Source: Paragordius varius
Lineage: Eukaryota > Animalia > Nematomorpha
Assembly (NCBI GenBank): GCA_964247055.1
Contig: OZ176055.1
Coordinates: forward strand, 2,542,001 to 2,606,000
Direction: 5' to 3'
Length of the DNA stretch: 64,000 bases
Part shown: positions 2,089-49,797 of the stretch, one piece after another
How the letters are laid out: each line of letters begins with the position of its first letter
Position numbering within the stretch: position 1 is the stretch's first letter
The notes under the pieces: generated by a model
The model's database searches: none
Told to the model about the DNA's origin: nothing
What the model saw: only the letters and a program-made list of their open reading frames with translations
Translations under genes and position numbers: made by a program

Positions 2089-2380
2089 ACTGTTTTTTTT
2101 TAATTTTAGTTTTTTTATAAGTCAAACTATATTTTACATCATAAATTGCTCAATACAAATAAGTACGGAACTTGTGATTCAAATTTTAAAATTATAATGT
2201 ATCATAAAAAATTTATAATATTGGGAAAAAATATAAATTAAAATTTTGTGGTATAATTGTTGTACTTATATAATCCTAGATTCTATGTGTTTTAAAAAAA
2301 TTTATTTTAATCATTCCTAATTCCATTAAAACTGATAAAAATTATATTAATTTGATGAAGTTTGGTCTACTTAATCAAAA

Positions 2381-4290
2381 TCTATATATTTATAAAAATG
2401 GAAAATGCTGGCTTTGTGATCTGGTACAGGAAAACCGGTAGACCCAATCAAATCCAAATATCGAAAAAATATAATCATTAATAAATGCCCCGACAATAGC
2501 TTCGCCCTTTTTTTTAAAATAGGCCCCCAGTTCGGGCCCACCCCGTATGAAAAACGGTTTTTTTTTGAAAACAGAAGTCCACAAAAATCGTGTCTTTGAG
2601 ACAATTTTCCGGAGAACGTGTTGGGCCATTCAATTTTAAATATGATTTTTGTTTACTTATTTTCGATTGCGCTGAACATAGCCGAGCCACTTTTTTGATT
2701 TAGGCCCTCTTTTTACCCGCTCCACCCGTGAAATGCCACCTTTTTCAAAAAACAAAGTCCACAAAAATAATTTTTTAAATCGATTTTTGCCCTAGGTATG
2801 AGACCGTAAAAATTCAATAAAGATTCCACGTATTCCCTGTTAAAAGGCAAAAATTTTAGTCTACCGTTTATTTGATGATAGCTGCTGGGTAAGGAGCTAC
2901 CTGCTAAAAACTGATTTTTCATATAACTTTGTGATCTGTTTCCGGAAAACCGGTGAACCCAATCAAATCCAAACATCGAAAAAATTAATCATTAATGAAT
3001 GCCCCGACAATAGCTTCGCCCTTTTTTGGAATTAGGTCCCCAGTTTGGGCCCACCCCGTGTGAAAAATGGGTTAAGTCAATTTTTTGGAGAACGTGTTGG
3101 ACCATTCAATTTCAAATATGATTTTTGTTTACTTTTTTCGATTGCGCCGAACATAGTCTAGCCACTTTTTTGATTTAGGCCCTCTTTTTACCCGCTCCCC
3201 CCGTAAAATGCCATTTTTTTCAAAAAACAAAGTCCACAAAAATAATTTTTTAAATCGATTTTTCGCCCAAGGTATGAGACCGTAAAAATTCAATAAAGAT
3301 TCCATGTATTCCCTGTTAAAAGGCAAAAATTTTAGTCAAGCGTTTCTTTGATGATAGATGCTGAGTAAGGAGTATCTATCATATGCATAGCATGTTAAAA
3401 GATATATGGATATTAATACATTATTTATGGTAATCTATATATTTATAAAAATGGAAAATGCTGGCTTTGTGATCTACAGAAAAAACGGTAGACCCATTCA
3501 AATCCAAACTTCGAACCTCCCCCCCCCCCCCCCAGAAGTCCGAAGGACTTCCTCGGGCTGCGCAGCAGCACGAGATTCACGCTAGTATATATATATATAT
3601 AATCTATATATTTATAAAAATGGAAAATGCTGGCTTTGTGATCTGGTACAGGAAAACCGGTAGACCCAATCAAATATCGAAAAAATATAATCATTAATGA
3701 ATGCCCCGACAATAGCTTCGCCCTTTTTTTGAAATAGGCCCCCAGTTTGGGCCCACCCCGTGTGAAAAATGGGTTAAGTCAATTTTTTGGAGAACGTGTT
3801 GGACCATTCAATTTCAAATATGATTTTTGTTTACTTTTTTCGATTGCGCCGAACATAGTCGAGCCACTTTTTTGATTTAGGCCCTCTTTTTACCCACTAC
3901 CCCCGTAAAATGCCATTTTTTACAAAAAAAACAAAGTCCACAAAAATATTTTTTTGATTGTATTTTTTTGCCCACGGTATGAGACTGTAAAAATTCGAGA
4001 AAAATTTTTCGTATTGCCTGTTAAAAGGCAAAAATTTTAGTCAAGCGTTTCTTTGATGATAGCTGCTGAGTAAGGAGTATCTATCATATGTATAGCATGT
4101 TAAAAGATATATGGATATTAAAACATTATTTATGGTAATCTATATATTTATAAAAATGGAAAATGCTGGCTTTGTGATCTACAGGAAAAACGGTAGACCC
4201 ATTCAAATCCAAACTTCGAACCCCCCCCCCCCCCCCCCAGAAGTCTGAAGGACTTCCTCGGGCTGCGTAGCAGGACGAGATTCACGCTAG
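2381..4290 (+). mobile_element. Two tandem non-autonomous Helitron-like elements (2381-3585 and 3603-4290)
   Basis: Each starts A|TCTATATATTTATAAAAATGG and ends with hairpins (GAAGTCC-GAA-GGACTTC and CTCG..GCTGCGCAGC..CGAG in the first copy) followed by CTAG|T. TC...CTAG ends in an A|T target with a subterminal hairpin are the established Helitron signature. No RepHel coding sequence is present. Confidence 0.75.
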
Positions 4291-4933
4291 TTTTCTAATA
4301 AAATATTAAATTCCTATCAAATATATCATATGATTTATTATTAGATATAAATATTATAGGAAAAATTGAACTATGCAAATAATAAATAAGCAATAAAAAA
4401 TGGATAAAGTTCAAAATAATACAATTCAGTATATTTTTAGTCATTCATAGCATTTTATTGCAATATGGAATTAATTTTTCAGCTTTTTATGAAAAATAAC
4501 TTGGAACGGATAACAATGATTTTGGGTAAAACATTATTCGGCTTTCAATTATATTGCATTTGTGAAAAATTAAATTATAATGATACTAATAAGTTTCAAA
4601 AAATTGGCAAAAATATTTTTCCATATTGTGCGCGCTTGATTCACAAACATTTATTTCAAAAATTAATAGAGTACATTCGTCGGATTAGCAAAGTCAAACC
4701 ACTCTTTGTGCGGACTGAATTTAAACTTAAATTGATAAACATTTAAAATTTTTCCTATATCCATAAATAATTTTATGTGATTTTTTTTCAAACAAAAATG
4801 TTTCGCGCAACGCCGATTAATGATAGTTAAAAATATTTTTAAATTTTTGATATGATTTTTTGCTAAATTGCGACGCCCTCTGATTTTTACAAAAAGAGGT
4901 AGGTTTGACTGACTCTACGACTGTCTTTTTTGT

Positions 4934-7900
4934 TTAATGGGTCGACGGATTAGTAGATGTATAAAATTTATATGGCATGTCATTAGTTGCGTTATGGATA
5001 AAATATTCCAAATTATTCTTAGTATTATCACCATTTGTAATTTCGCTGGGTAAATATGAGGAGTTTTGTTTATTTTTAAATTCATCATTAAAAATGTAAT
5101 TTTCGTCGAGAGCTGAGAGGCCAAGGGAAGGGGGAGTAGAGGTGCCTGCTGAAAAAGTGTTTAACTTTTGCGTTAATTCATAGACTTGTTGTTCCAAATC
5201 ACGTTTGACTGTGTTGAGTCGCTTATACTTTTCTTGCATATTGGGTTGCTGTTTTTTTACACAAATAAGGTAAATATAAAAATATTTGAGAGAATTACGC
5301 ATTATAGAGATATTATGGTTGATTATCATTTTAGAATATATTTTCTATGAATAATTAGCCTAAAATCATATATATAGGGTTTATAATAAAAATTTTCATT
5401 TTCGACTTTTATTCTAAAAGCAGCTTAATCGATTTTTATCAACGCATTTTAGCTAATTTTAAATAAATTCCATAAAACAATATTTGTATGTATTTTTAAC
5501 AATAAATTTTGTAATGCGCTTTTTTCAAAATATGTTTAAATATAAATAGGAAATTATTTGACATAAAATGTTTAAATTGAAGTAGGCCCCATTTTTTCAG
5601 GATACAATTAAAAAAAACAGTTTATAATAAACAAACAGAATTTTCAATTTTTTAAAAAATTAACCATAATGTTTTTATTAAATTTTTACCTCATTTACAA
5701 TATAAATTTATTAATGTTATATACACAAATCTTGCTTTTTGATTCGTATTCAAATTTTTTGTTAAAAGGTCTACTTTTCAAAACTTTACAATTTAAAATT
5801 CAAGTTAATGCCAAATATTTTAATTTATTACCAATTTATATCTCTATACAATTTTTCAAATCACACACACATATAAATCTTTTACTTGGCATTTTGTGTA
5901 AGGATTCCACCGTAAATAATACGCATTCCAAAACTCCAAATGTCTAATCGTTACTATGGGGTAAAGGACACATTTTCGCGGTATAACCAATTCCCTTTGC
6001 GAATTCATAGTGTGCATATTGTTACTATTGATTGATTTTGGCGCAAATGGATTGATATAAAAGGGATTTATGAAATCATTGAGATTACTATTTATGGCAG
6101 ACCATAGAGATTGAGTATTCATTTTGACTTTCTGCGTGTGTGCGCATATATATCATTTAACAAATTCACTCTTAAACAAATCAAATTCACCCTTAAAAAA
6201 TCACCCTTGAACAATTCAAATTCACCCTAAAATAAATTCTTAAGATCAAAAATTATTTTTATTTTTTAAAATTTTTAAAATATGAGATTGTCTTTATTAA
6301 TATAATGCTGAAAAAATAATAAACTCTCGTAAAAATATATTTCATATTAATGATGAATTATATTCAGAAAACATATAATTTATTTTTAGGGTGAATTTGA
6401 ATTGTTAGAGGGTAATTAGAATTGTTCAAGGGTAATTTAAAATTCGAGGGTCAATTTGATTTATTCAAGGGTGAATATGAATTTTAAATGGGATATAAAA
6501 ATGCGGCTATACTTTTTGCTTCTGCTTCGAGTCCGTGACAAAAATTATTATTGCATATTAAAAGGAATTATTTTAATCAAAATGGATGTAAAATAAAAGA
6601 TATTAGATATATCAGATGGAATTTGAGCATAAACGCCGTTAAAATTTTTTATTGATAAAATTATTTTAAATAATCCCACATCATGAAGTGATCAAAACAA
6701 ATGTAGAAATTAAAACAAATCTATTTTTATAAACGCAGATATTAATATTCAAAAAAATCAAAAAAATATTTAACCGCAAAAATATCTTTTAAAGTATTGA
6801 TAATTAATGTATACCAATATTTCGACCCTTTCGCGTTCACAATTGCCTAAAAATGTACCAAAAAGACAAGAATGCAAATTATCCAAAATATATATAAGTA
6901 GCGTTTGATCAAACTCAAAAGCTTGTGGGAATTGACGTGTGAGTTGAAATACGCAATCCATAAATTGCAAGAAAACAGGGCTTACTTCAGAAGCTTTGTT
7001 CTTAAAGCGAGTGTAATCTAGAGATTTTTTCTAAAAACATAAAAATAATTATTCAAATTCATATTATATTGAAATAAAGTTTATTAAGATTAAAAATTAT
7101 AAGTTAAAATTATTTAAAAATATTGAGTTTAAATTATTTAGGGTGAAATTATAAATCAACAAACATAATGCAAAGGAAAAACTCAAAAGTTTCTTAAAAA
7201 TGGGTTTGAAAAAACTTAAAGTCATGCTAAAAAGGTATATAAATCTTAATCATCACAAAATATTTTAAAGCAAATATCCCCGAACATGATAATATAATGA
7301 AAGAAATTCTTTAAACCATAATAACTAATTTTTTTGAACCATAATGATATCAAAAAAAATCTTTTGTGAAGATATCAAATATTTCTCATACTTTCTTTTG
7401 TCCTGTTGAGGTGGAAACATTAATGGACGATGACGTGGCATTAATTTTGGATAAAGGGGGAAGCGAAAAAGCTGAAACCGAAGATTTTTCCCCACCTATA
7501 CTTGTTGATTCCTCATCGTTTATTCCATTGTAAGCATTGTTCTTATTCATTTCATAAGGGGGTGGTGGTGGTACGGCATAACTATGCCTTAATCCAACAA
7601 CACTATTTTTACCAAAATTCTTTCTGAGTGCTATATCATTATTTTCTCGAGAATGTAAATTATTTGAATTTGCTGCTGAAGTTAAAGTTGATAAATTATC
7701 ATTGATATGAGTTTTAATGGGTAAAGATGTGTTGCTTAAATCATTTAAGTCTATTGAAGATGTATGAGGGGTTGCTTTAGAAGTGCTTTGATTTTTTAAA
7801 TTTTTATTGGTTAGAGAAGTTGGCGTAGAATCATAATTATCCCAACCATGAGCAAATCTCTAAAGGAATAAGAATTAATAATTTTTATATTGTTAGCCCA

Positions 7901-10900
7901 TCCCAATAATAAGCCCATTTTATTATAATAAATTAAAAAAAGTAACAAAGATGGCAATAATTGCTTCAAAACTTTACAAGTTTTGCGCATTAGGTCCAAA
8001 ACTTAATATATGGTTCTCAAGGCAAAATATTCAACCATTTTTTTGAAATTTGTGGAATGTAAATATAAATACATTTCGTTAAAAATAAAAATATGATTTA
8101 AATGCAAAACCTTCAATTTTAATGCCTCTATTCGTAAATAGAAGTCATGATTATTACAAGATGGGTTTTCAAAATATGCAAAAAGTCATAAAAATCTTAA
8201 AACTCAATGTTAAAATACCTGTGAAAATTTGTGACCAAATGAGATCCATTCTTTTTCCAACAAAACTTCAAAGCCTTCAATGGTCCGGTAATAGGGATCC
8301 AACATCAACATAGCAAGGGATGTTAACTTTACGAAAAATTACAATTAATATAGACAAAGTATAAAGAGCTCAAATTTATGTCAAAATATCCATAAATTTT
8401 AATAAACTATTAAAAAAATATTATTTGAATATAGATATGCTTTGCACATTAAATTGGTCAATCAATTATGGCATAGTTGGTTACCCATTAAAATATCATT
8501 CCAAAACATTCACAGGATAAAATAATTTATATAATGTATAAAAATAAAAAATCATTTTTAGAAATTTACCATAATGTATTATACCTGAGCAGTTCGATCC
8601 CAACCATCTGAACAATGTATAAATACCGATGTTTGCTGATTATCAACTTTATCCACAATACGTAAAGCACCAAACAATATGGCCTAAAAATTAAGAATTA
8701 TCGAGTAAAAAATTAAAATTATATATCGAAAACGTAAAAAAATAGATAAATATTATTTAGTTACAAATACAGAAAGCCATAAATTTTTTGATATAACTTA
8801 AAGGATTAGGAATAGCAAAATGTTTAATTGAACTTAATCTCAAATGATAGGTCAATTTTGAAAACATAATTATTTTTAAAAAAAATATACTTATTATTTA
8901 TACGTTTTTTATGTATGTATATAATTAATTTTTGTTGTAAATTTAAAAAAAATATTATAAAATTTGTTTGACATAATAAATGATAACCAAACCCTAATGT
9001 GGTCTAACCAATGTGTAGATTCTAGCTTGGTTAACCAGTGCGTTTCATCTACAAAGGGAAAACATTCTTTTTGTAATTTCTTCAAACTATATACAAAATA
9101 AAATTTAAGATGTTCAATGATTTGTATATAGTCTATAAAAGTGATGACATGGTATTGAAAAAAATTATGCAATGTGACAATTGTAAAGGGATAAAAGTTT
9201 CTCTAAAAATTTTGTAACCTCAAGTTAACACCCCCCCCCCCCCCCCCCCCCGTTTAATAGGTTTTTAAATCATATAACAAAATTAATTATTTCGTAGCAC
9301 ATTCTCAATCATTAAATTTTTGACTATATGTGGGTTTAAAAATTATCAAAACTTTTTATTAATTAATCACCTAGTAAGTATTTAGCGATTAGTATTTGAT
9401 CATTTAACACTTTTTACATGTAAATTTTATTTGTAGTTGAAAATAAAATGTTGAATAAAATGAAAAGGTATTATTTGCAAAAATTGTAAATATAAAACCT
9501 GTCTCTCATAACATGTATGTTAGCTATATCAAGGAAAATAAATTCAGTGTCAGGATATTGTTCTTCAGATTCATAACCACCACCCTTAGCCTATTATATA
9601 ATCAACACAGGGTTTTTACATTAAGATATTTTATATTTTAATTCGTTTATGAATCAGAAAGTTATGATGTATAAAGTTATATTTTAAAAACTGAATATAA
9701 TGAAATTAAAAATTTAATAAATAATTTCATTTCTATTAATATTTTCAACCGAACATTTTTTTCCCCAAGATTTATGTTCCAATACAAACCTTATCAAAAA
9801 TGTCTAATTAGGCGTTAAAAATTGTAATGTCCAAATAAAACAAATCTATAATTTAAACATTTTGGCCATTAATTTAGGAAAATATACTTAAAATTCAAAA
9901 AATATATAAAAAAGTAAAATGAATAAATTCATATAGTTATAAGTTTTTACCCAAAGAAAAAAAAGAATAAAACCCCATAAAAACTACCTTATTAGCGACA
10001 GCATTAATACGTGGTCTGGCATCAAAAATAGCCAAATTTTGGCTGTAATGTGCATTTGATTCAACCAGCAATTTAATATATTCTCGGTCAGATTGACTAC
10101 TGGCATTTTGATTCGTATTTAACGATAAACCCGACAAGGGTTGAGCCCCCCGTAAAATACAAGCATCTGAAGGGGTTGTGGTTGTCAAATTTCTACTAAC
10201 CAAAAAAATGGAATTAATTTATTTTATAGCATAGAATTAATTTTAAAATTGTAAAAATTATAAAGATAAAAACACAATTTTTCCGTTATATAAACGAATC
10301 TGAAGAGGTCGTCGGAATTCTAATAAGAAATTTAATTGGGTTTTTTAGCATAATTCTTATCAATAAAATTGTTTCTGCAAAATAAAAATTGAAATTATCA
10401 AGTTAAATATAAAAAGGCAATTCCCCTCCCTCGCGTAAAATACAGGCTTTTGAATGGGTTGTGGCCAAATTTCTGGCAATAACGAGAAAAAATGGAATAA
10501 TCTATTTATTACAGCATATCTCGGTAAATGAGAAGTCGAAATCTAAATTATTTGATTTATAAAATTAAAATACTACCCATATATATTGTTGAGAGATTAA
10601 TTATTGTATATTATAATATCTGACACGAAAGGACTGTCATATACGGAATTAAGATACAAATGTATATTTTTTTAAACCCTACTCATTTGAACCAATTAAA
10701 AATCTAAAAATATGGTATACTTATGTTTTTATGTGTGGATCTGTTATAGAAAATTTCGATTTTTACTTTACATATCATACGCTTTTTCTCAATCGCTGTA
10801 TTGGTATAAATACTTAAAAAATTGGCCATCTTACATACATTATTACAACAAAATTATTAGGGAAAATGTTATCATTTATAACTTAATAAAAATAAAAATT

Positions 10901-13900
10901 AAGCAATTTAAATTATTTTGTGGGAAAAAATATTTAATAAATGTGAAATTACTTTAAGGATTGAGGTGATGAGTGGTGTTCTAAATTAATGTGTTGTATG
11001 GGCGGAGTTGGCCATTTCCAACACAAAACGGGTATACGCTGACGAGATCTATACTTTGCAACGGATCTCAACAAATCTTCGCTTGCTCCACGGGGTACAC
11101 ATAGCTAAAGATAATTTTTGAAAATAATTTAAAGTAAGGTATCAAATTTTATTTTATATTTTCATACGATATCTTCGAGAACATAATTGGCTATTTAACA
11201 ATGCTTTTCATTTAAACAGTAAAATTTATAATTATAGGACAAAACATAAAAATTTAGGGCAAAATTTTTTCAAAAAACTATCATTCTTTTTCAAAACTTA
11301 ATATATCCTATTAAAAGCATATAATAACAATCGTAAAATATGTAATCATTGTGTTACCAATATACATCTCTATTTTTGAATTTAAGATTAAAACAATGAA
11401 ATATTTTAAAAAATCAATTAAAAGGTATGGTTTTATTAAAAAAATATTTGTTTTTATATTAGATGGCCGTATAAATTAAATTTTTACTGTATATATATAC
11501 CATATACAATTCAAATTCACCCCCGAACAATTCAAATTCATCCTTGAAATTCAAATTTACCCTTGAGCAATTCAAATTTATCCTCGAACAATTCAAATTC
11601 AACCTTAAACAATTAAAATTCACCTAAAAAATATTTTTTCAGTATTTTTTTAATTTTAAACAATATTTCGTTATTTAAATATATAAAAAATATAGGTATT
11701 TTTTAATTTTAAATACTAATTCAAGGGTGGCTTTAAACTGTAAATGGTATATTATATATGTATTGTATTTAATCAAGAATTAACTTAATTCTCAAATTAA
11801 TTTACGCAATGGTCAAAGAGAATAGTTGCGTAAAGCAAAATTTATATAAGATTTCATAAAACCAGTAGAATATTATAAAAAATTATAAAGTTATTTATTA
11901 TAAATTGAGTTTTTACATATGGTCATGGTATAGGCTTTCAACAATTTTAACAAAATTATGGTGTAAAATAAATGAAAATATATATATATATATATATATA
12001 TATACTACCAATGATGGATAAGTCTCACAAAATTTGTAATCTGCATTAATGTGAGTTAGCCTCCAATTCTCATCCGGTATACCCTAAAAATTAATTATAA
12101 TTATAATGAATAAAACATATAAAATATTAATATGTTGCCATAGCAAATTAATCATTGAGATAATTTTAACCGTTTTTTTTCAAATATAAATCATAAAATT
12201 ATGATATAAAATAAGTGATTGTACTTACTAATCTTTGATATTCTCTGATTGGATCATAAACGCTCCAACCATTAGTTTCAAATGGTTCAGTAAAGTAAAA
12301 GGCCCACAGAGGCTATCAAATAAATATATTTTAATATTCGATATTCATAATTTTAATGCAAATTAATATTTTTACATAAGGCATATAATAAAATAATACA
12401 TTAAATAATTTTAGCACTATGCATTTAATAATAATGCCCATTTAAATTTTGCAAAAATTATATATATATATATATTATATATATATATATATAGCCTAAA
12501 TTTTAACAATTATATAATTAGTTTTATTTAAAAAATAAAATCATAGATTTATTTACGTAATAATAGCTATGCATTTATAGAAGTAATTACCAATAAAGAT
12601 AAAACTAAGTAAAAGGCCAAATTTTACAATTTTTTTCCTATAATCTTATATATTAAGCGTTTACCGACAATCAAAACTAACCAAAAGTCCCATTTACACA
12701 AAATTGTTGTTTTTTAAAAAAAAGCTCTCAATTAGTCTGATATTTTAAAACTTTCTTAAAAAAATTATTACATAATACCAAATTAATGTTTAATGGAAAG
12801 ACAGATTTATACAATTGTTCGTAGAATGTTCGCCGTGAATGGTTTCGTGCTGGGAAAGAAAATCTCAAATATCGTAAATCCTATAAATTATTTAAAAAAT
12901 ATTATGTATGTCAAAAAGAGGGGAACCTTTTATAATGATGATATTTATTATTAGATATACTAGTCTTAATAAAAAAATAAGAATATAATATAACTATTGC
13001 AAATTTATAAAGACTAATTATTTAATAACAACCGTTTTAACAATATAAACCTATATTATTTGCTGTAATTTATAAAAACTTTACCAATTTATTTATAAGG
13101 GTGGTAAAAGAGAGAGAAGAAAAAGACAAAATGTTAAACCTAAAAAGTATAAATGTTGATAATTAAAAGCACGCATTTAATCACGACGCATCATTTAAGA
13201 ATTATTAATAAAATTTAAGACATTTCCCTATCATAATATTTATTTAAATTGCAAAAAGTACCCAATTGACTTTTAAAATTCTAAATTTACCCTTATAATT
13301 ATAACCAAACCTTTTATATTTTCAACAAAGCGTATAATTGTAATAAAGTATTTGTTTTAAGGATAATTTTATTTTTTACTTTGTCAATTTTTAAAAAAAT
13401 TAAAAATATAGACATTTTAATGCAAGTTACATTTTTAAATTTTGTTAATATAATTTTTAACAAATCAAGCCGCTTAACATAAATAATATCGAAAATTGTC
13501 ATATATATGATATTTTTCCTTTATTCACTAATATAAAATTGGAACATTTTATAAGTTAGTTTAGTCTAAAACCACAATATTTAAATTTTAGAAACGATAA
13601 AAAATGTGAAAAGTTAGATTAATAATGTTAAATGTAATTTGAGGTGTTATACATGTAGAAATTAAATAGACCAATTTTTTTTAATTTTAATAAATGCAAA
13701 AAATAAATGTCCTGATATTAATAATATATATGGATAGTTGTGATATTTTACGTTAATAAATAAAAATTATGCTATAAATTGTATAAAATTAAATTTATAT
13801 ATTAAGTATAGAAAAAAATCAAATGATCAAACGTAAACGTATCGCAAATTGTAAATATGTATCATAAGAATATAAATATATTACTTTACAATAAACTACA

Positions 13901-14180
13901 ATCCCATAATTATTATCGCCTGGATTCGCTACAGTACTTTGATTTCCGAATTTTTCGATTCGATTAATCACGCCAAGGGGCAAATCTAAAATAACATCCT
14001 TAATTTAGTTAAAAATATACTTTAGGCGTAAAAAACATTAATCTAAAAGTAGTAACGCCGATGGTACCATTAATAATTCCATTGAATGGGCAAAGAAAAT
14101 TAACGTTTTGACCTAAATATTTATTTTTAATTACTTTCGCACACCATATTCTCTCCGTGAAAAAATTGTATCAGGTTCAT
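4934..14180 (-). CDS. MTMR2: Myotubularin-related PI3P/PI(3,5)P2 3-phosphatase (MTM1/MTMR1/MTMR2 group), catalytically intact
   Basis: Exons (minus strand): 14180-14135 (start uncertain), 14112-14021, 13998-13885, 12880-12779, 12312-12229, 12083-12009, 11104-10953, 10195-9988, 9590-9499, 9086-8993, 8683-8585, 8326-8219, 7859-7392, 7030-6815, 6131-5886, 5248-4934. All junctions are GT-AG and in phase. The translation contains [64 protein letters not shown] (active-site CX5R), [45 protein letters not shown] and a C-terminal coiled coil. The symbol denotes the subfamily; orthology among MTM1/MTMR1/MTMR2 is unresolved. Confidence 0.93.
6151..6494. mobile_element. Small foldback MITE with 21-bp AATTCAAATTCACCCTTGAAC-type repeats (degenerate ends)
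   Basis: The left arm carries caaattcacccttgaacaattcaaattcaccc and the right arm the reverse complement gggtgaatttgaattgtt... repeats. Same family as the copies at 11498 and 47330. Confidence 0.65.
11498..11749. mobile_element. Foldback MITE, 21-bp repeat type AATTCAAATTCACCCTTGAAC, with TACCA...TGGTA ends flanked by TA
   Basis: Starts (ta)TACCAtatacaattcaaattcacccccgaacaattcaaattc..., has about five 21-bp units, and ends ...caagggtggctttaaactgtaaaTGGTA(ta). Confidence 0.7.
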
Positions 14181-18012: not shown

Positions 18013-19360
18013 TACCATTTTTCATACAAAAACATCATTTTTTCAATCAAACGCACCATTTTTTCAAGCAAAGGCAACAACTTTTTAAGCAAATGCAACA
18101 TTTTTTCAAGCAAGGACAACATATTTTAAAAAACGCAGCATTTTTTCAACCAAAGACAACATTTTTTCAAGCAGAAACAACACTTTTTATAATATTATAA
18201 AGAACTATTTTTTGTATGACAATATTAATTATTTTTTAAATTATAAGTTAATGTAATTTTTACCATTGAATAATGATTTTTATCGTTTTACATCAATATT
18301 TGATGGTAAATTAATTGATTAAACATTTTGATTTTGCCCATAAATTGCCTTATTTGTTTTTAATTATATTTTTCTTTTACATCTTTTGTTTCCCCTATAA
18401 TCAATTTATATAATTTGCACGAGTGTCTTTAATTATTTAAAGTTGGTCGATGAACACTTCAAGTTGATCCTTCAATATTTTAATTTTGATTCTACCTTTT
18501 ATTAATAAAGCAATTAAATATATTTATCCTATCATTTTTAACCTATTCTCTTTATTAAACTTTTAAATGAATAGCAACTTTTTTTCATGATAACCGTATA
18601 TCCTTATGATTTCTGTAAAAATTTTTTTAACCCTATTTAAAAATATCTAAGTTTTATGGGTTATTGATTGTAGTATTTAGTTAATAACATTTAGTATATA
18701 ATATTGATAACTTAGCTCGAAACAAGTTGTTTTTATTGAAATATTATTTTGAATGAAACATTAATAAAGCTATTAGGTTAAATTTAAAAGTAATTACATA
18801 CAAAAATAACGGTTGTATGCTGCATAAATGTAAGGACCAACTAAGTGAAGGACAACTTTAAATATTTAAAGACACTCTTGATGTGCAAATTATATAAATT
18901 GATTATAGTAGAAACTAAAGATGTAAAAGAAAAATATAATTAATAAAAACAAATAAGGCAATTTATGGGCAAAATCAAAATGTTTAATCAATTAATTTAC
19001 CATCAAATATTGATGTAAAACGATAAAAATCATTATTCAATGGTAAAAATTACATTAACTTATAATTTAAAAAATAATTAATATTGTCATACAAAAAATA
19101 GTAATTCTTTATAATATTATAAAAAGTGTTGTTTTAACTTGAAAAAAAGTTGTCATTAATTGAAAAATGCTGCGTTTGGATGAAAAAATGTTGTCTTTGG
19201 ATGAAAAAATGTTGCGTTTGCTTAAAAAAATGTTGTTTTTGCTTGAAATAATGTTGCATTTGCCTGAAAAGTTGTTGCCTTTGCTTGAAAAAATGTTGCG
19301 TTTGTTTGAAAAAATGGTGCGTTTGATTGAAAAAATGATGTTTTTGCATGAAAAATGGTA
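18013..19360. mobile_element. Foldback element: ~450-500 bp inverted arms with terminal 21-bp tandem repeats (CAACATTTTTTCAAGCAAACG type)
   Basis: TA-TACCATTTTT at 18011 and AAAAATGGTA-TA at 19362. The arms are mirror images through the repeat array and a long unique stretch (ttgcccataaattgccttattt / aaataaggcaatttatgggcaa). Confidence 0.85.
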
Positions 19361-20352: not shown

Positions 20353-20449
20353 GGAAATATTAACTAATCACGCATGTAAGCTAACAGCTGTAAAAAATAT
20401 TTTATTTACTGAATAAAAAGCCTAAAACTTTCAAATTTATGAACAATAA

Positions 20450-22001
20450 TCTATATATTTATAAAAATGGTAAGTGTTAGCTTTGTGATATGTTTCCGGA
20501 AATCCGGTAGACCCATTCAAATCCAAATGTCGAAAAAACATAATAATCAATGAATGCCCCAACAATAGCTTCGCCCTTTTTTAATTAAGCCCCCTGTTCG
20601 GGACCACCCCGTGTAAAAAACGCTTTTTGAAAACAAAAGTCCACAAAAATCGTGTCTCTACGATTTTCCGGAAAACGTGTTGGACGATTTGATTTTAAAT
20701 ATGTTTATTTTGTACTTATTTTCAGCGCTGAACATAGTCGGCTTACTTTTTAATTTAAGCCCTCTTTGCCCGCTCCCACCCGTAAAATAAAGCCCACAAA
20801 AATAATTTTTTGAATCTAGTTTTTGCCCAAAGTATGAGACCGTAATAATTCCATAGGGATTCCAGGTATTCCTTTTTAAAAAGCAAAATTTTTTATTCAA
20901 GCGCTTTTTTGTATCAGTCTCTGGGTAGGGGGCTACCCGCCTAAAACTGCGACACTATATCGAGGTTGCGTTGTTTAGGAGTTTTTTTTCAGAAAATAAG
21001 GCAAAATTTCAAGTCGAGCGGTTTTAAATTTAGCCGTTTATTAGGCCCTTTACGCCCTAAAAAATGCGCTATCCTTCAACTATTATAGTTTTAAAGCCTT
21101 TTTTCCAAAATCTTTAAGAACATATGGAATGAAAATTACCCTAATTTTTATTAAACGTCTTTTTTATATTGGCATTTGGTTAGGGGCTACCCGCCAACAA
21201 CGGAGTCACCATATCGATGCAGCATGCCTTTGGAGTTAAAATTCAGAACTATGATTCTAATAGGAACATATAGAATCCATGATAATTCCAGATATTCCTT
21301 GTATAAAGGCAATATTTTTGCTCAATGCTTTTTTTATATCTGCCCCTGGGTAGGATAACCGCCAAAACCGCGCACTATATAGCAATAGCTTTGTTCTGGG
21401 GCTAATTTACTGAAATTTTATGAAGCTTATGAGCTCTTTAAAAGCTTGAATTATTACCTGTAACTAGGCAATGAAGGTCAGGTTTTTTTTATTAGCCGTT
21501 AATTTGGGGTCCTTATACCCTAAAAATACGCCATCAATAACGTTAGTGTTATATTTTGTCAAATTACCCATGAATGGTAAAAGTTAATTCCAAATATATT
21601 ATATTAAAGGCAAAGAATTTAACTCAGCGCCTTTTTCATATAGGTCTATGGGTAGGGGTCTACCGGTTTAAAAATAAGACCATACAAAAATGGCTTGGTC
21701 TTGGATTTAATTTTAAAAAAAAAAACTTAAGAAGGAATACCCGATGTCAAAAATAAAACTTTCTTTGCACGTTTCACCCAATAATTACTTATGTTTTTTA
21801 TAGTAAGATCATTGCTGAATAAATATATATTTTTTGTTAACATAGTTAGTGTGGGGGCCTTTATACTATAAAACTCGCTCACCAATATGGTTCTGAGGCT
21901 ATTTTTCGCCAAAATTATGAGATCATAAAAAATTAAATAGAAGTGCAGATCGCGTATAAAGGCTAAAAAAAATTGCTCCTCCCCACAGGAAGTCCGGCTA
22001 G
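20450..22001 (+). mobile_element. Non-autonomous Helitron-like element of the same family as 2381-4290
   Basis: Starts A|TCTATATATTTATAAAAATGG and shares internal blocks with the 2381 copy (caatagcttcgccctttt, aagtccacaaaaa, gtatgagaccgtaa). It carries internal GGGTAGGGGCTACCCGCC-like sub-repeats and ends ggaagtccggCTAG|T. Confidence 0.7.
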
Positions 22002-22526: not shown

Positions 22527-23926
22527 TACCATTTTTCATGCAAAAACATCATTTTTTCAACCAAATGCAACATTTTTTCAAGCAAACGCAACATTTTTTC
22601 AAGCAAACGCAACATTTTTTCAAGCAAAGACATCATTTTTTCAAGCAAACGCAACATTTTTTCAAGCAAACGCAACATTTTTTCAAGCAAACGCAACATT
22701 TTTTCAAGCAAACGCAACATTTTTTCATCCAAACGCAACATTTTTTCAACCAAAGACAACATTTTTTCAAGCAAAAACAACAATTTTTTAAAAATTAAAA
22801 ACCATTTTTTTATTTTAAGACATATTAAATTTAAAGTTAATGGAAATTAATTTTAGCGTAGAATTATGATTTTTATTATTTTACCATAAATATGTGATGG
22901 TATGATTGATTTTCAAACAAAATTTTGCCCATAATTGCATTATTTATATTATATTTTTTCTTTTACAACAGTTTCACTAAATCAATAAATACAACTTGCG
23001 CTTTAAGAGTGTCTTGTTTAAAGTTTCTTTCATTTTTTTGCAAACAACCGTTATTTTCGTATGTAATTATCTATTTTTTTTAACTCAAACTAATATCTTT
23101 ATTTATTGGTATTTGAATCAAAAATAATATTTTTATAGTAAAAACATCTTTATTTGTTTCGAACTAATTTTCTTTAAATCAATATTATTAACTTATTGAT
23201 GTTTTAAACTAAATATTACGATTAATAACCCACAAATCCTAGATGTTTAATAATGTTAAATTTTTTATAAAAAATAATATTGATATATGGTTCTTATGAA
23301 AGAAATGGTATTCCCTTAAAAGTTTAGGAAATAAAGAAAATAGGTTAATGATAGGATAGATGAATATAATATTGCTTGATTAATAAAAGTTAGAATCAAA
23401 ATTAAAATATTGAAGGACCAAATTGAAGTGTTCTAGGACCAACTTTAAATTTTCAAGGACAATTTTGAAGCGCAAAATGTATGGACTGATAAGGTTAAAC
23501 TAAAGTTGGAAAAGAATAAAATAATATAAATAATGCAATTATGGGCAAAATTTTGTTTGAAAATCAATCATACCATCACATATTTATGATAAAATAATAA
23601 AAATCATAATTCTACGCTAAAATTAATTTCCATTAACTTTAAATTTAATATGTCTTAAAATAAAAAAAATGGTTTTTAATTTTTAAATGATTGTTGTTTT
23701 TGCTTGAAAAAATGTTGTCTTTGGTTGAAAAAATGTTGCGTTTGGATGAAAAAATGTTGCGTTTGGATGAAAAAATGTTGCGTTTGCTTGAAAAAATGTT
23801 GCGTTTGCTTGAAAAAATGATGTCTTTGCTTGAAAAAATGTTGCGTTTGCTTGAAAAAATGTTGCGTTTGGTTGAAAAAATGTTGCATTTGGTTGAAAAA
23901 ATGATGTTTTTGCATGAAAAATGGTA
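22527..23926. mobile_element. Second copy of the foldback element with CAACATTTTTTCAAGCAAACG 21-bp arrays
   Basis: TA-TACCATTTTTCATGC at 22525 and GCATGAAAAATGGTA-TA at 23928. About 12 near-perfect 21-bp units per arm, and the arms continue as inverted repeats to ~22960/23520. Confidence 0.88.
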
Positions 23927-26239: not shown

Positions 26240-27410
26240 GCTTCATAAATTAACTTAAATCGTTTCATCTGCCTTCTTTCGGTTTGCTACTGAAATCCAG
26301 CATTCTCATTTTAAGAAATATTTTAAATAAAACTTATTTTACTGTTTTTAAAGGATCTACAAAAACCAAAACAATAATACCATTGATAAAAGCAATTAGA
26401 TTCTTTTTAAAAATTTTAAATATCAGCTACCTTTCAGTTTCTTTTAATAGTTCAAATGCCACATTTATGTATGAATCGGTCAATTATTATCGGTGATCGA
26501 CGGATTCGTGTGATATATTATGCTGTAAATCATCCTCTAGCTCTTTTCTAAGTGAGGCCTGGTGGAAGAAATGTCCGTTTCCATCCCCAAATTCGCCATC
26601 CGAAAAGTCGCCTGGGGGGACAGCTTCTCTCGGATTTTGAATTAGCGGATACATTCCTCGGTTTATATCTCCGAAAGTAATCATTGCAGATCTATCGCTT
26701 CCAGGTAGGGAGATCTATGGTACTTTGATCGGAAAGCAACCTTATTTAACTGACGACGAACATTATTATTATTGTAATCATTCAGTGGTGGTATCTGAAA
26801 GATTGTAATGTAATCATCCGTTTGAGTTGATTTATCCTAAGTTTAAACAATTCCTCTTTTATTGCATCTATTGCAAACTGTTTTTTTATATGTTTGTGTC
26901 ATTACTCTCTGTTTTCTTTAGGATTTTTTCCACTTTTTAGAATTGACATGGGTGGTTTTTATATTTTTCACTTTATATTTCCTCTACCTTTTAACATTAA
27001 TATTGGTGGCGGTTTGTATGTTGATGTTTATTCATTTGTAACACACTATTTAACTTACACATTCCACAAGCAGAATTTGATACATTTTTATTATTAATTA
27101 TTTCTTTGGAAATCAAACAACCTTGACATGTTTGTGCGAGGAAAGGTACTTGTAAATTCTTTAAAGCATACTATTAACCTTTTTAATTTTCCTGAAGGTC
27201 ATATAATGTTGGCGGTAATTTTCAGCATGCATGTAAGGACTTTATAAAATAAACAACAAATCTCGCTTGACTCATTTTTTATCTTCATAAATTGATAGTA
27301 AATATCTGGGCTGAAAGTTAAGTAAACGGTTATTTTAAGATTTTTGGATAAAACTATTTTTTTAGATTTGTAATAAGGTATTGTAAGGATGGGGGCATTA
27401 ATAGCTTCAT
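26240..27410 (-). pseudogene. Decayed tandem copy 1 of the orphan Lys/Arg-rich gene
   Basis: Colinear with 28620-29858 (ORF 26487-26684 retains PREAVPPGDFSDGEFGDGNGHFF). It has in-frame TAA (26845-26843) and TAG (26839-26837) where the intact copy has CAA/CAG, and the exon-2 acceptor AG is lost. Confidence 0.75.
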
Positions 27411-28619
27411 AAATTAAACGACTGAAATCGTTTCATCTGCCTTCTTCTTTCGGTTGCTACTGAAATCCATCATTCTCATTTTAAGAAATATTTTAAACAA
27501 AACTTATTTTATTGTTTTTAAAGGATCTATAAAAACCAAAACAAGAATATTATTGATAAAAGTAATTATATTCTTTTCAAAAATTTAAATATCAGCTACC
27601 TTTCAGTTTCTTTTAAAAGTTCAAATGCCACATTTATGTATGAATCGGTCAATTATTATCGGTGATCTAGTACAACGGATTCGTGTTGCTGATATATTAT
27701 GCTGTAAATCATCCTCTAGCTCTTTTCTAAGTCAGGCCTGGTGGAAGAAATGTCCGTTTCCATCCCCAAATTCGCCATCCGAAAAGTCGCCTGGCGGGAC
27801 AGCTTCTCTCGGATTTTGAATTAGCGGATATCCTCGGTTTATATCTCCGAAAGTAATCATTGCAGTTCTATCGCTTCCACGCTTCCATGTAGGGAGATCT
27901 ATGGTACTGATGCATGATCGGAGAGCAACGCCATTTGACAGAAGACGAACATTATTATTATTGTAATCATTCAGTGGCGGTATCTGAAAGATTGTAGTGT
28001 AATCATCCGTTTGAGTTGATGAATTTTGAGTTTAAACAATTCCTCTTTTAGTGCATCTATTGCAAACTGCTTTTTTATATGTTTCTGTCACAACTCTCTG
28101 TTTTCTTTAGGATTTTTTTTCACTTTTTAGAATTGACATGGGTCGTTTTATTGGGATTTGCAGGCCTTTAGATTATATTTTTCACTTTATATTTCCTCTA
28201 CCTTTTAACATTAATATTGGTGGCGGTTTGTATGTTGATGTTTTCTCCTTTGTAACACACTATTTAACTTACACATCCACAAGCAGAATTTGATTCATTT
28301 TTATTATTAATTATTTCTTTGGAAATCAAACAACCTTGACATGTTTGGGCGAGAAAAGGTAACTGAAAATTCTTTAAAGCATACTATTAACCTTTTTAAT
28401 TTTCCTGAAGGTCATATAATGTTGGCCGTAATTTTCAGCATGCATGTAAGGACTTTATAAAATAAACAACAAATCTCGCTTGACTCATTTTTTATCTTCA
28501 TAAATTGATAGTGAATATCTGGGCTGAAAGTTAAGTAAACGGTTATTTTAAGTTATTTGGATAAAACTATTTTTTTAGATTTGTAATAAGGTATTGTAAG
28601 GATGGGGGCATTAATAGCT
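27411..28619 (-). pseudogene. Decayed tandem copy 2 of the orphan Lys/Arg-rich gene
   Basis: Highly similar to copy 1 over ~1.2 kb. It has the same in-frame TAA (28034-28032) in VCNRCTKRGIV*TQNSSTQT and lacks the exon-2 acceptor. Confidence 0.75.
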
Positions 28620-29858
28620 TCATAAATTAAACGACTGAAATCTCTTCACGTGTTTTCTTCGTCCGGTTTGATACCGAAAACCAGCATTCTCACTATATTT
28701 TAAGAAATATTATAAATAGAATTCTTTTTACTGTTTTTAAAGGATCTTTAAAACCCAAAACAAGAATATTAGTGAAAGTAATTAGATTAAAAATATGTAC
28801 TACCTTTCAGTTTCTTCCGAAAGTTCAAAGCCCACATTTATGTTGGGTAACGATATATGTCGGTCAATTATAATTGCCGATCTAGCACGACGGATTCGTG
28901 TTGCTGCTATACTTATCTGTGTGCGTTCATATTCTACCTCATCTCTAATTGCCCGCTGGAAGAAATGTCCGTTTCCATCCCCAAATTCGCCATCCGAAAA
29001 GTCGCCTGGCGGGACAGCTTCTCTCGGATTTTGAATTAGCGGATACCTTCCTCGGTTTATATCCCCGGTAATCATTACAGATCTATCGCTTCCACGCTGC
29101 CATGTAGGGAGATCTATGGTACTTACACATGATCGTAGAGGAACTTCATTTGACTGACGACGAACATTATTATTAAGGCAATCATTCACTGGAGGTATCT
29201 GAAAGATTGTAGTGAAATCGTTTGTTTGAGTTGATGCATCCTGAGTTTGAACAATCACTCTTTTACGATTGCATCGATTACAAACTGTTTTTTTATTTCT
29301 TTTTGTTTTTACACCTCTCTGTTTCTTTGATGAAAGTTCACCTTTCTCCTTTCTAGCAACTGATTTTTTACTTCTTTGTGATTTTCGTTGACTATTCCCT
29401 TTACCTTTAATATTTTTCGCTTTTCTGCAACGGCTCCTGTTTTTTTCTCTCACAGTTATTTTGGTGTTTCGGACTGTTTTCGGCCGTTTGGATGTTACTT
29501 TAGTTATGTTTTTGTTGGTTTCTCTTCCTGTTTTCTGTCGTTTACAATTGAGTTTAGTAGATGTTGCATGTTTTCGCTTGACACATTTTTCATTTATTAG
29601 AGAAATCTGTTTCCGCTTTCTTTTTTGAGACTTTTTATTATATGAAACCTTTCCACTATTTTTCTTTTTGTTAATTATGTTTTGAAAGACATTTTTGCTT
29701 TTCGGCGGTTTGAGAGGAATTAAAGAATGCTTTTTGCTTTTATGTTTGGATACTGCCTTATTTTTTGGCTTAATAACACATTTCTTTGCCGAAGTTATAG
29801 ATATTTTTTGTATTTTTCGTGTTTTAGTAGTAATGCTTTGGTTGTTTTTGCGTTTCAT
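28620..29858 (-). CDS. Orphan highly basic (Lys/Arg-rich) protein, probably two exons (29858-28804 and 28692-28620)
   Basis: A 352-codon ATG-initiated ORF in ~75% AT DNA ends at an AG|GTAGTA donor-like site. Splicing a 111-nt intron to TATAG|TGAG continues in frame to SENAGFRYQTGRRKHVKRFQSFNL*. No recognisable family. Exon 2 is inferred. Confidence 0.65.
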
Positions 29859-30960: not shown

Positions 30961-32271
30961 ATTTCCCAGTCTAAATAAACGTTTTCCCAGTCTATCGAAA
31001 CATTTTCCCAATCAATCGAAACGTTTTCCCAGTCAATCGAAACGTTTTCCCAGTCAATAGAAACATTTTCCCAGTCAATAGAAACATTTTCCCAGTCAAT
31101 AAAAACATTTTCCCAATCAATAAAAACGTTTTTCCAGTCAATAAAAACGGTATTTATTATTGATAATAAATATCAAAACAAGATAGAAAAATAACTTTTA
31201 ACCATTATTAGCGTAATATTAGGATATTATTTTTTATGAATTAACAATTATTGAATGAAAATATTTTTTATATATTCCAATACACAATCATTAATAATTT
31301 ATTCTTTAAGAGCTATATTTTATGAACTGGAAGAATATTTTATGGTTTTTAAGTATTTTATGAAAATATTTAATAAGTTTTTTATTTTATCGATGGTTCG
31401 CATTAATATTCGAGGCTAACTTTTAAAGATTTATAAAAATATACCATTTTTATCTCAAAGGTCATTTAACACTTCATATGGGGTCTCAAACATAAATTTT
31501 ACCCTATTTTTATATTCATATGGTTCATCGGAGGCCTAAGAAAATCTTGGTAAAATTCATATTTCTTACGCTATTATTCTGAATGAGTTTATAAAATTGA
31601 CAACGAATTAAAAAAATATATTGTGTTTGTACTTTACAGTCTTATGTCTAAGATATAAATTATTTATGAATGTCCTTATATAATACGAATACGAAACGCC
31701 GTGCTTTTTGGGTTAAAAATGCGGCCCGCAAAGCCATTGTGCTAGAATATCCTTTTTTATAAAATATTTTTTAATAAAAAACATATTTAAAACCATGTTT
31801 TGTTCAGATTTTTTCCGACAGTATTTTATTCGACATGTTTATGATCCAATTTGAAGCGTTAGATAACCAATTTGAGATAAAAATGGTATATTTTTATAAA
31901 TTTTATTATCCGTAACTATAGACTTTAAAAGTTAGCCTTGAATATAAATGCGAACCATCGATAAAATAAAAAACCTATTAAATATTTTCATTACGCTAAT
32001 AATGGTTAAAAGTTATTTTTCTATCTTGTTTTGATATTTATTATCCAAAATAAAAACCGTTTTTATTGACTGGAAAAACGTTTTTATTGATTGGGAAAAT
32101 GTTTTTATTGACTGGGAAAATGTTTCTATTGACTGGGAAAATGTTTCTATTGACTGGGAAAACGTTTCGATTGACAGGGAAAACGTTTCGATTGACTGGG
32201 AAAACGTTTCGATTGACTGGGAAAATGTTTCGATTGACTGGGAAAACGTTTATTTAGACTGGGAAATGGTA
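30957..32271. mobile_element. Foldback element with variant 21-bp arrays (AAACGTTTTCCCAGTCAATCG type), inserted in a (TA)n microsatellite
   Basis: (TA)n-TACCATTTCCCAGTC at the left end and GACTGGGAAATGGTA-(TA)n at the right end. About nine 21-bp units per arm plus further inverted unique sequence, including an inner inverted pair (atcgatggttcgcatt / aatgcgaaccatcgat). Confidence 0.85.
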
Positions 32272-33254: not shown

Positions 33255-34361
33255 AAAATTAGCTACATAACCACGCCATTTTTGTATGGCGTCTCACTTT
33301 CAAACCGGTAGACTACCCATAGACCTATATGGTAAAAGCGCTGAGTTAATTTCTTTACCTTTATATATTTGGAATCATCTTTGATACCATCGTCCCATGG
33401 GTTATTCAAAAAAATACCTCAACACTATATAATTGTTATATGATGGCGTATTTTAAGGACATAAAGCCCCCAAATTAACTACTATTAAAAATACGCCTGA
33501 CCTTTTTTACCTAGTTACGGGTATTTCAAGCTTTTAATGAGCTTATATAGTTTAAAACAACGCCTATACAGTGGCGCAGTTTTTGGCGGGCAGCTCCTAA
33601 CCCATGGGGAAAAAAACATTGGGAAAAAGTGCCTTTATGTGGGCATTATCTATAATTATCCTTCCATATGTTCCTATTAGACTCATAGGTTAAAATCATT
33701 CTATGGTGGCGCCTTTTTCAGGGCGTAAGGGGCCTAATTTCAAAAAACCGCACAACCTAAATTTTTGCCTTGTTACGGGTAATAATTTAAGCACATATTG
33801 AACTCGTATGGCCTGATGGGTTTTCTGAAATTTAACTCCAAAACAACGTGATTTCTATATAATGGCGCAGTTTTTGGCGGGTAGCTTCTAACTCAGGGGC
33901 AGGCATAAAAAAACGTTGTGCAAAATTTTTGCCTTTTAACAGGGAATATGTGGAATCCTTAATGTTTTCGGTCTCATGCCCTGGAGAAAATATAGGTTCA
34001 AAAAATTAGTTTTGTGGACTTTTTTAAAGAATGGCCTTTTACCGAGGGGGCGGGTAAAAAGAGGGCATAAATAAAAAAGGCGAGCTGACTATGTTCTGCG
34101 GAATAGAAAATTAATAAAAAAATTCCATTTGAAATCGAATGGTCCACGTTTTCCGGAAAATTGTCTCAAAAACACGATTTTTGTGGACTTGTGTTTTCAA
34201 AAAAGACAGGTTTTACACGGGGTGGGCCTGAACTGGAACCCTAATTCAAAAAAAGGGAGAAGCTATTATGCATTCATCTAGACATTTGGATTTGAATGGA
34301 CTACCGATCCTCCGGAAACAGATTATAAAGCCACCACTTTCCATTTTTATAATAATATAGA
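33255..34361 (-). mobile_element. Reverse-oriented, diverged copy of the Helitron-like family; 3' end uncertain
   Basis: The minus strand begins A|TCTATATTATTATAAAAATGGAAAG at 34361 and is colinear with 20450-21700 down to ~33255. A possible degenerate 3' end (hairpin GTCAC..GTGAC then CCAGCTAT) lies at ~32862-32892. Confidence 0.65.
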
Positions 34362-35039
34362 TTCAATAATTATTTATTCTAGGCTAAATCAGAATTATGA
34401 CGAATTGTTTTTACTATTGAGATCTGCCCCAGTGCTCACCCGAATTTTTGGTGAATATCTATCCAAACTGTTTTACAGTTCATGTTTTGTTAGGAGTCCT
34501 TTTTCAAATATAATAGGTTATAAAATATAATAACATTTTTAATTGATTACACTAATCGACAAATTTGGACTTTTTCGAGCACCAACACTCAAATTTTTGA
34601 ATTTTGACTGATTTCAGTGTTTAAATTGAATCTGAAAAAAAATTTGATACCACCGATCAGAATTTTGAGATATTACAGGTTAATTTTTCAAAAACAAGAG
34701 AAAACAAACAGAAAACTAAATATAACTTTAAAATAAAAATTTATTATATTATTAAATTGGTATCAATTATAACTTTTTAAATCTATCTTCTGAATAAATA
34801 TGTCATTTTGATATCAGGAAGAAAAAAATAGTACGGGTATCGTTAAATAGTGTTTTTAAAGCTAATTTAAACATGTATAAATTAAAATACTAAAAGAGGC
34901 ATTTTATGGTTTAAACCTTCGGCTTTCAGAAGCTATATTTATTTTGTTGGTTGGCTATTTTTTTACTTTTCTCTTCGGTTGATTCTTACAAAAAAATCTG
35001 TTATTTATACCTAGTGGATATTGTTTAAATGATTGGATG

Positions 35040-38710: not shown

Positions 38711-39446
38711 AATATATATGAAGAAATGTATATTCATCGTGTTATGTAAAGGCAATATTGATTTAATAGCCGTACAAACAGCATTATGGTCCTTACTTTT
38801 TAAAATAACAAAAAATCATGTTAAATGTAAATTTTAAAAATCTTATCTTTGGTGTAAAAGGGCTCTTTATTTGCGATATAAGAGAGCGTGGCCTTTAAAG
38901 ACAATTTTGAAGATATAAGACATCACGAGTGTCAACTTTACCCCTTCGAGTGACCATGTTTCAGCTCCACCCCTAAGGGCTAACCCGCAATAAATATCCA
39001 TTGTATTACTTTGATGTAAGTCTCAAATTTCGCAAAAAGAGATGCCGGAGATTGGTAACCCTGCTCAAATATCAGCGGCTCCAACATTGCTCGCCAAGAT
39101 GCAGGATATTATACCTTTCAATTTTGGCGCATAATACAGTCATGTCTATATAGAATTGTCTTTTTTTTTTATTTAAATGATTATAATTTTTTTTTAATTG
39201 TTTTGATGTTTGATATGTCAACTTTCAACATGCGCATTTTTAAGCCTTAAAATAATAATAGCCTATTTAGTGTAAGAATTTTTAATTTATAATTAAAAGA
39301 TGTTGCAAAATATTATTCTTGAACATTTTATCTACAACATGCGCATGTAATTTATGATAACCAAGTTTAATATATGTTTTCATTTTCTAGGGGTTTTTAA
39401 CATGCACTTAAAATATATAAGAAAACCCAAGCAGATGTCCATTTAA

Positions 39447-39546
39447 TCTCTATATATATAAAGAAATAAATCATAAATCTAGAGTTATTTTAAAAAATTA
39501 TGAATATCAACGATAACCCATTATTTCTTCTTTGCTCGGCAGCTAG
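39447..39546 (+). mobile_element. Possible 100-bp mini-Helitron nested inside the Tc1 element
   Basis: A|TCTCTATATATATAAAG ... GCTCGGCAGCTAG|T, i.e. TC/CTAG ends in an A|T site. The subterminal hairpin is weak (TGC-TCG-GCA). Confidence 0.45.
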
Positions 39547-39669
39547 TGTACTTGAAGGTTTATATTAAAAAATAAAAATTCAGAACAAAATCTAATATTA
39601 AAGGAAAACATAGCTCCCTCAGTTTATACTTTTGAATCGGATACAAGTGAAGAGTCTTCAAGTATTTAT

Positions 39670-40575
39670 ATGTCCTTAACATCTATAAATATATTAAGAA
39701 GAAAAATAATTCTTGGGAATTCTACTGATAGAAATAAATCTGGTCGGCGTAATAAATTCAGAAATCCAGAAATAATAGATGCTGTCAAAAGATTAATAAA
39801 CAATGATTGTGAATTAACAATCGGTGAAATAATGGAACAAATACCAGACCATATTAAAGTATGCAGAGCAACTATTTACAAAATTCTCTCGGATTCAGAA
39901 ATTACTCGAAAGAGGTGTATTTTACAACCTCGGGAACGAAACACCCCAGAGAATATAGAAAAGCGTTATAATTATGCCAGATTGGTGAAAGATATTCCAC
40001 AGGAAAAAGTTTTTTTTATTGATGAGTCAGGCTTCAGTTTGAAACTTACAAATATATGGGGTAGAGCTCCAAAGGGCAAATCTCCTATTGTAGAGGGATT
40101 TAACAAAGGTAAAATTTGAATTTATTTTAGGAAAAAATGTTTCATTGATATGTATGATTGGTTGTCAGGGAGTTATTAATTACAGAACAAAAGAAGGCGC
40201 CTTTAGAGGCGATGATTTTCGAATTTTTTGACGGAATGTTTAACAAGAATTCCTGAAAGTTCAATAATAGTTTGCGATAATGCACCTATTCACAAAGCCG
40301 CGGTGTTAGGTGAGCTAAGGAATAAAATAGTTTATTTACCTCCATATTCGCCACAACTGAATCCCATTGAATGTTTTTTTCATGAGATTAAACATCAATA
40401 TGATAAAAAACCCCGGTGTAGTACCCCTCTAGAGCAACATAATAAAATTGCAAGACTTTGCGAAGAGAGAAGGGAAAAAAATCTAAAAAATTATTATAAT
40501 TTTTCTTCACATATTTTGTTGGAATGTATGCAAAGAAAACCCCTAGAAAATGAAAACAATTATAAATTTATTTAA
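39670..40575 (+). pseudogene. IS630/Tc1-type transposase with a 22-nt intron (40109-40130) and a 1-nt frameshift in the T6 run at 40224-40229
   Basis: HTH-like region (ELTIGEIMEQ..VCRATIYKIL..ITRKR), first Asp in FFIDESGF, second Asp in IVCDNAPIHK, Glu in YLPPYSPQLNPIE. After splicing it reads FNKGKNVSLICMIG..KEGAFRGDDFRIF, then needs one extra T to join LTECL. This could be decay or a homopolymer error. The frame is open upstream to 39556, so the true start may lie 5' of 39670. Confidence 0.85.

Positions 40576-49749: not shown

Positions 49750-49797
<48 letters not shown>

Follow-up and report, generated by a model that had tools for sequence, protein, structure and literature searches.

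A gene resembling MTMR2 in a nematomorph genome is interrupted, within the part that encodes its PH-GRAM domain, by two consecutive GT..AG segments of exactly 22 nt. As judged from reading frames, homology and position, these two segments, and probably also a third one located within a transposon, are very probably genuine U2-type GT-AG spliceosomal introns at minimal length. All three lie within the window, by which we mean the whole 64-kb stretch of DNA that was analysed, and its features are collected in Table 1.

Table 1. Genes, putative introns and repeats of the 64-kb window (lower coordinate first on both strands).
Feature	Position	Strand	Details
MTMR2-like coding region	4934..14180	-	16 exons, 15 introns, 741 aa, no internal stop
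MTMR2-like exon 1	14135..14180	-	probable start codon 14180-14178
MTMR2-like putative intron 1	14113..14134	-	22 nt, phase 1, 9% GC
MTMR2-like exon 2	14021..14112	-	92 nt, PH-GRAM part, flanked by 22-nt segments on both sides
MTMR2-like putative intron 2	13999..14020	-	22 nt, phase 0, 14% GC, stops in both flanking frames
MTMR2-like exon 3	13885..13998	-	114 nt, PH-GRAM part
MTMR2-like intron 3	12881..13884	-	1004 nt, ordinary long, phase 0, conserved position
MTMR2-like exon 13	7602..7859	-	low-complexity insert of ~85 aa rich in N, S and T, inside phosphatase domain
Tc1-like DNA transposon, complete-looking	39132..40895	+	1764 bp, transposase and 191-nt terminal inverted repeats, 98% complementary
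Putative intron in transposase	40109..40130	+	22 nt, phase 1, GT..AG
NNT (NAD(P) transhydrogenase), full gene	41486..60347	+	~19 kb, about 20 exons, all introns long
C2H2 zinc-finger gene	62216..63999	-	runs past window end; at least one intron of a few hundred nt
Lysine-rich ORF	28800..29858	-	352 aa, no Pfam match
Partial C-terminal copy of ORF	26490..26714	-	upstream of ORF
Partial C-terminal copy of ORF	27735..28031	-	upstream of ORF
Minisatellite array pair	18018..18188 / 19138..19355		21-nt period, 8-12 copies each
Minisatellite array pair	22532..22789 / 23692..23921		21-nt period, 8-12 copies each
Minisatellite array pair	30962..31149 / 32054..32266		21-nt period, 8-12 copies each
Dispersed repeat copy	2374..4294		
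Dispersed repeat copy	20440..21000		
Dispersed repeat copy	33266..34527		

The identity of the host gene is clear from its downstream same-strand pieces, which carry a myotubularin phosphatase domain (Pfam). The closest match of one of its exons among 1.84 billion representative proteins was the myotubularin-related protein 2-like of Gordionus sp. m RMFG-2023, with 76% identity. Using tblastn with the Gordionus MTMR2-like protein, 16 exons were mapped between 14183 and 5123, and the 741-aa model is 58% identical to Gordionus XP_065322686 over 699 aligned positions. The low-complexity insert of exon 13 is common to Gordionus and absent from other animal MTMR2 proteins, which align only up to about residue 413 of the model. 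The closest orthologue is thus a nematomorph one that shares a derived insert. With the full Gordionus protein as query, no second nematomorph MTMR2 orthologue was found. The GC content of the window is ~25%, that of the Gordionus locus 26.8% and that of the whole Gordionus assembly 26.9%. We also considered a 21-aa insert in exon 15 as a hidden intron of a length divisible by three; this was rejected, as any GT..AG pair that removes the insert deletes conserved residues.

The first segment, GTAATTAAAAATAAATATTTAG, and the second, GTATATTTTTAACTAAATTAAG, are present in the window with the sequences and coordinates given in a preliminary description of this DNA (14134-14113 and 14020-13999). 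It had further claimed that their removal yields an MTMR2 PH-GRAM sequence and that their retention breaks the frame, and both claims proved sound. Left unspliced, the region from 14165 to 13885 has stops in all three frames. When 14165-14135, 14112-14021 and 13998-13885 are joined, a single open peptide of 79 aa results, and this aligns with residues 83-159 of human MTMR2 across both junctions with an E value of 3.5e-13. The alignment is ungapped at junction 1, and the loop near junction 2 is shorter by 3 aa. Retention of any of the three 22-nt segments, including the one in the transposon, leads to an in-frame stop within four codons (after ESN, KVYF and KGKI). As 22 is not divisible by three and these stops come so soon, an unspliced transcript would give a truncated product.

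Splice sites further apart could in principle serve the same region, with exon 2 skipped or another first exon used, in which case the 22-nt segments would not be removed as units. A length of 22 nt does lie below the range of most spliceosomes, and alternative pairs 58 and 82 nt apart exist at junction 2. However, when the possible choices were scored against the Gordionus orthologue, the 22-nt splice had the top score at both junctions, and at junction 2 the 58- and 82-nt alternatives reached 164 and 127 as against 203, with loss of conserved PH-GRAM residues. Furthermore, exon 2 is ~71% identical to its Gordionus counterpart and hence under coding selection, and the intron positions and phases agree with those of two other animals, as set out below. 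We therefore regard the use of distant sites as very unlikely.

In order to compare intron positions and lengths, the Gordionus and Capitella teleta MTMR2 proteins were each mapped exactly onto their own DNA, and a four-way protein alignment was made of the window, Gordionus, Capitella and mouse, the mouse sequence being used without intron data. Such a comparison with other MTMR genes had been suggested in the preliminary description, and its outcome favours excision: introns 1, 2 and 3 share their alignment columns among the window, Gordionus and Capitella, with phases 1, 0 and 0 in all three, although the column of intron 2 is off by one among the species, beside a gap. In gene order, the introns of the window gene measure 22, 22, 1004, 466, 145, 904, ~832, 397, 412, 309, 258, 359, 571, 683 and 637 nt, where the ~832-nt value is approximate, the junction of exons 7 and 8 being placed at about 11024/10193. 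The thirteen long ones agree with the range of 145-1004 nt claimed earlier. The corresponding series are 2429, 4734, 359, 533, 1195, 1012, 486, 590, roughly 1100, roughly 740, 96, 13849, 405, 145 and 425 nt in Gordionus, and 61, 61 and 158 nt followed by twelve of 47-112 nt in Capitella. Introns 1 and 2 thus share positions and phases among the three genes whereas their lengths (22/22 here, 2429/4734 in Gordionus and 61/61 in Capitella) are up to ~200-fold apart. From the shared columns and phases, both 22-nt segments of the MTMR2-like gene appear to be ancient introns that have shrunk, with their place kept and their interior lost. In this lineage the loss would have gone on until nothing but the two splice-site regions remained. 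In Priapulus caudatus the MTMR2-like gene has no introns (1740 nt encode 579 aa). It thus looks like a retrocopy and is uninformative on intron positions.

Positional conservation also bears on whether the segments could be spurious insertions or frame errors, arising from assembly or sequencing or from decay of the gene, which we consider less probable again than the use of distant sites. In the reading frame of exon 2, intron 1 contains no stop (VIKNKYL), and judged by sequence alone a 1-nt indel together with a 7-aa insert could mimic it; the transposase gene described below does contain a 1-nt frame break in a T run. The same explanation cannot account for intron 2, because it has stops in both relevant frames. 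In addition, an artefact would require two 22-nt GT..AG insertions to hit ancient intron positions precisely and in the correct phases. The remaining 13 junctions and the 741-aa frame are clean, and with the rest of the gene intact over 16 exons it is not a pseudogene. Excision of both segments as introns hence remains the preferred reading.

The third 22-nt segment reported in the preliminary description is likewise present. This segment, GTAAAATTTGAATTTATTTTAG, lies in a DDE_3 transposase gene (Pfam) within the Tc1-like transposon. The spliced 65-aa transposase peptide scores 27.0 bits against DDE_3 over profile positions 2-64 with no net indel, as compared with 17.9 bits when the segment is retained with an X at the frame change, so that splicing gains 9 bits. 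The transposase frame shifts by one base in the T run at about 40216-40228, where this copy of the transposon may be defective or the assembly wrong. The segment is open in the downstream frame, and judged by sequence alone an indel could mimic it. The case for an intron here is weaker than either of the two in the MTMR2-like gene.

The splice signals of the three segments are similar. Their 5' ends read GTAATT, GTATAT and GTAAAA, the GTA(A/T) resembling that of the long introns of the MTMR2-like gene, and their 3' ends read (T/A)AG followed by G. GC contents are 9-14%, the interiors are A-rich with an A at position 11 in all three, CTAAA occurs in intron 2, and T tracts do not exceed 3-5. In terms of what characterizes U2-type GT-AG introns, the termini are found in all three, restoration of the frame in the MTMR2-like gene and the transposase, and orthologous positions for the MTMR2-like introns only. 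U12-type introns begin with (A/G)TATCCTT, and none of the three 5' ends does so. Removal or bypass without a spliceosome, whether by cleavage of the IRE1/XBP1 type, a tRNA-type endonuclease, ciliate-like DNA excision or ribosomal bypass, is the least probable alternative: XBP1-type introns are near in size at 23-26 nt, but IRE1 sites have CNG|NNG at each cut, in stem-loops, and this is absent here, the third intron base being A and not G in all three, while the boundaries are GT..AG rather than the TA..TA of DNA elimination, the host genes are unrelated, and other animals have ordinary introns at these positions.

If the segments are spliceosomal introns, the ordinary spliceosome would remove them by way of a reduced 5' signal, GTA. 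The branch site would be the A-rich stretch 6-11 nt upstream of the AG, with the branch adenosine, at a guess, at positions 11-16. Little or no pyrimidine tract would be needed, as proposed for the short introns of myxobolids and the dicyemid. That three independent introns have the same length of 22 nt suggests a lower limit or a preferred length for this spliceosome. A search of the window against Rfam found no snRNA or other RNA genes. The preliminary description had taken the short introns to imply an unusual splicing mode. Nothing points in that direction: the boundaries are plain GTA...AG, as in the long introns of the same gene, and in the known animal cases the canonical U2 machinery is present (PMC13644364).

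Short introns are not the majority in the window. An intron census comprising the MTMR2-like gene (13 long introns), NNT (about 19 long), the transposase and at least one zinc-finger intron gave three introns of exactly 22 nt and about 33 of at least 130 nt (up to about 2250 nt), with none between, so that the short ones are three of about 36. This supports two intron length classes inside the 64-kb window, and to this extent the sharply bimodal intron population claimed for the animal as a whole in the preliminary description holds. The short class forms a narrow peak below 30 nt, all three members being exactly 22 nt in what is a very small sample. For NNT, every exon aligns with bacterial PntA or PntB, each match lying inside one open frame, and the ~19 gaps between the coding pieces are each at least 130 nt and up to about 2200 nt. 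The zinc-finger gene has a further possible intron of 126 nt at 63248-63123.

We also scanned the window for short introns under strict settings (GTA...AG, 16-31 nt, at least 20 stop-free codons on each side, exon GC of at least 0.30 and intron GC of at most 0.25). Only three segments were returned, all of 22 nt and each independently supported by homology. Control boundary words gave 3-19 matches of scattered lengths, and the same scan of the Gordionus locus gave 6 matches of 17-28 nt, none of them supported by homology. In this ORF-based scan of the window, which is not specific, GTA...AG segments showed no excess over control words, and looser ORF-only scans for further short introns were swamped by repeat noise. 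Since control words also match, the case for short introns rests on homology and identical lengths and not on an excess. The chance of three random segments sharing one length among the 16 allowed is ~0.004.

In parasitic flatworms intron lengths are two-peaked, with a small class of about 30-36 nt. The present introns are comparable in that a short class stands beside long introns in one genome, the flatworm short class being ~10-15 nt longer. The closest precedents in length are found in other animals. According to Hadjez et al. 2026 (PMC13644364), the median intron measures 22 bp in Thelohanellus kitauei and Myxobolus rasmusseni and 27 bp in Henneguya salminicola, with similar medians elsewhere among 51 animal genomes only in Dicyema japonicum. 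The authors concluded that animals acquired introns shorter than 30 nt on at least two occasions, once in the myxobolids and once in the dicyemid, most introns being short in both. The 22-nt length is hence not new for animals, given the published myxobolid median of 22 bp. Among the known cases named in the preliminary description, the myxobolid myxozoans had been missed.

PMC13644364 describes short introns whose splice signals are pared down to 'GTa' and 'AG', with A residues ahead of the AG, in genomes where the U2 and U2AF components are canonical. The introns in the window resemble those of the myxobolids in being GT-AG introns of ~22 nt at conserved positions between conserved exons, with reduced signals, A residues ahead of the AG and little pyrimidine tract. 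They differ in that short introns are the majority in the compact genomes of those cnidarian parasites, whereas here they are three of about 36, stand beside introns of 130-2250 nt, and occur in a repeat-rich ecdysozoan. Dicyema japonicum, as cited in the same source, is likewise a parasite with animal introns below 30 nt and reduced motifs; it belongs to a different phylum, however, and short introns dominate there. Outside animals, tiny introns are known from Paramecium (~25 nt) and Stentor (15-16 nt) and also from nucleomorphs and microsporidia (PMC13644364 and PMC5014332). The window introns have in common with these a narrow length peak, AT-richness and premature stops on retention; in contrast, nearly all introns are tiny in those non-animal systems.

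In the literature searched we found no report of such short introns in Nematomorpha, and the nematomorph genome papers examined are silent on introns. The present case differs from the known ones in that short introns are outnumbered by long ones, that the genome is repeat-rich, and that in a related genus these introns reach kilobases. A wider reading, on which we find the balance even, would make Nematomorpha the third lineage of animals in which introns shorter than 30 nt arose independently. These would be a discrete minority class: some kilobase-scale ancestral introns would have shrunk to a fixed 22 nt, most introns having remained long, in a genome that is repeat-rich and not compacted.

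If this is true, extreme shortening of introns can occur without compaction of the genome. The two MTMR2-like introns offer a natural comparison between a length of 22 nt in the window, 61 nt in the annelid Capitella and 2.4-4.7 kb in a second horsehair worm, Gordionus. There would also be consequences for annotation. Any gene finder whose minimum intron length is set above this would break such genes, and annotation or BUSCO-type tools that refuse such introns would report the genes as frameshifted or missing. Part of the heavy loss of universal genes reported for horsehair worms could then be an annotation artefact. The BUSCO completeness of the Gordionus assembly is 71.6%, and we infer that short introns possibly contribute to low BUSCO scores in the phylum.

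The remainder of the window contains several repeats and one further open reading frame. No match was found in the protein collections for the spliced 79-aa peptide or the transposase N-terminus nor, by exact look-up, for the 352-aa lysine-rich ORF. The two partial C-terminal copies upstream of this ORF share IQNPREAVPPGDFSDGEFGDGNGHFF. The arrays of each minisatellite pair are in opposite orientation and ~1 kb apart, resembling the ends of foldback-type or long-inverted-repeat elements. The copies of the dispersed repeat have a GC content of 0.32-0.34, above that of the rest of the window, and their translations share KASIFHFYKYIDY and LIGSTGFP.
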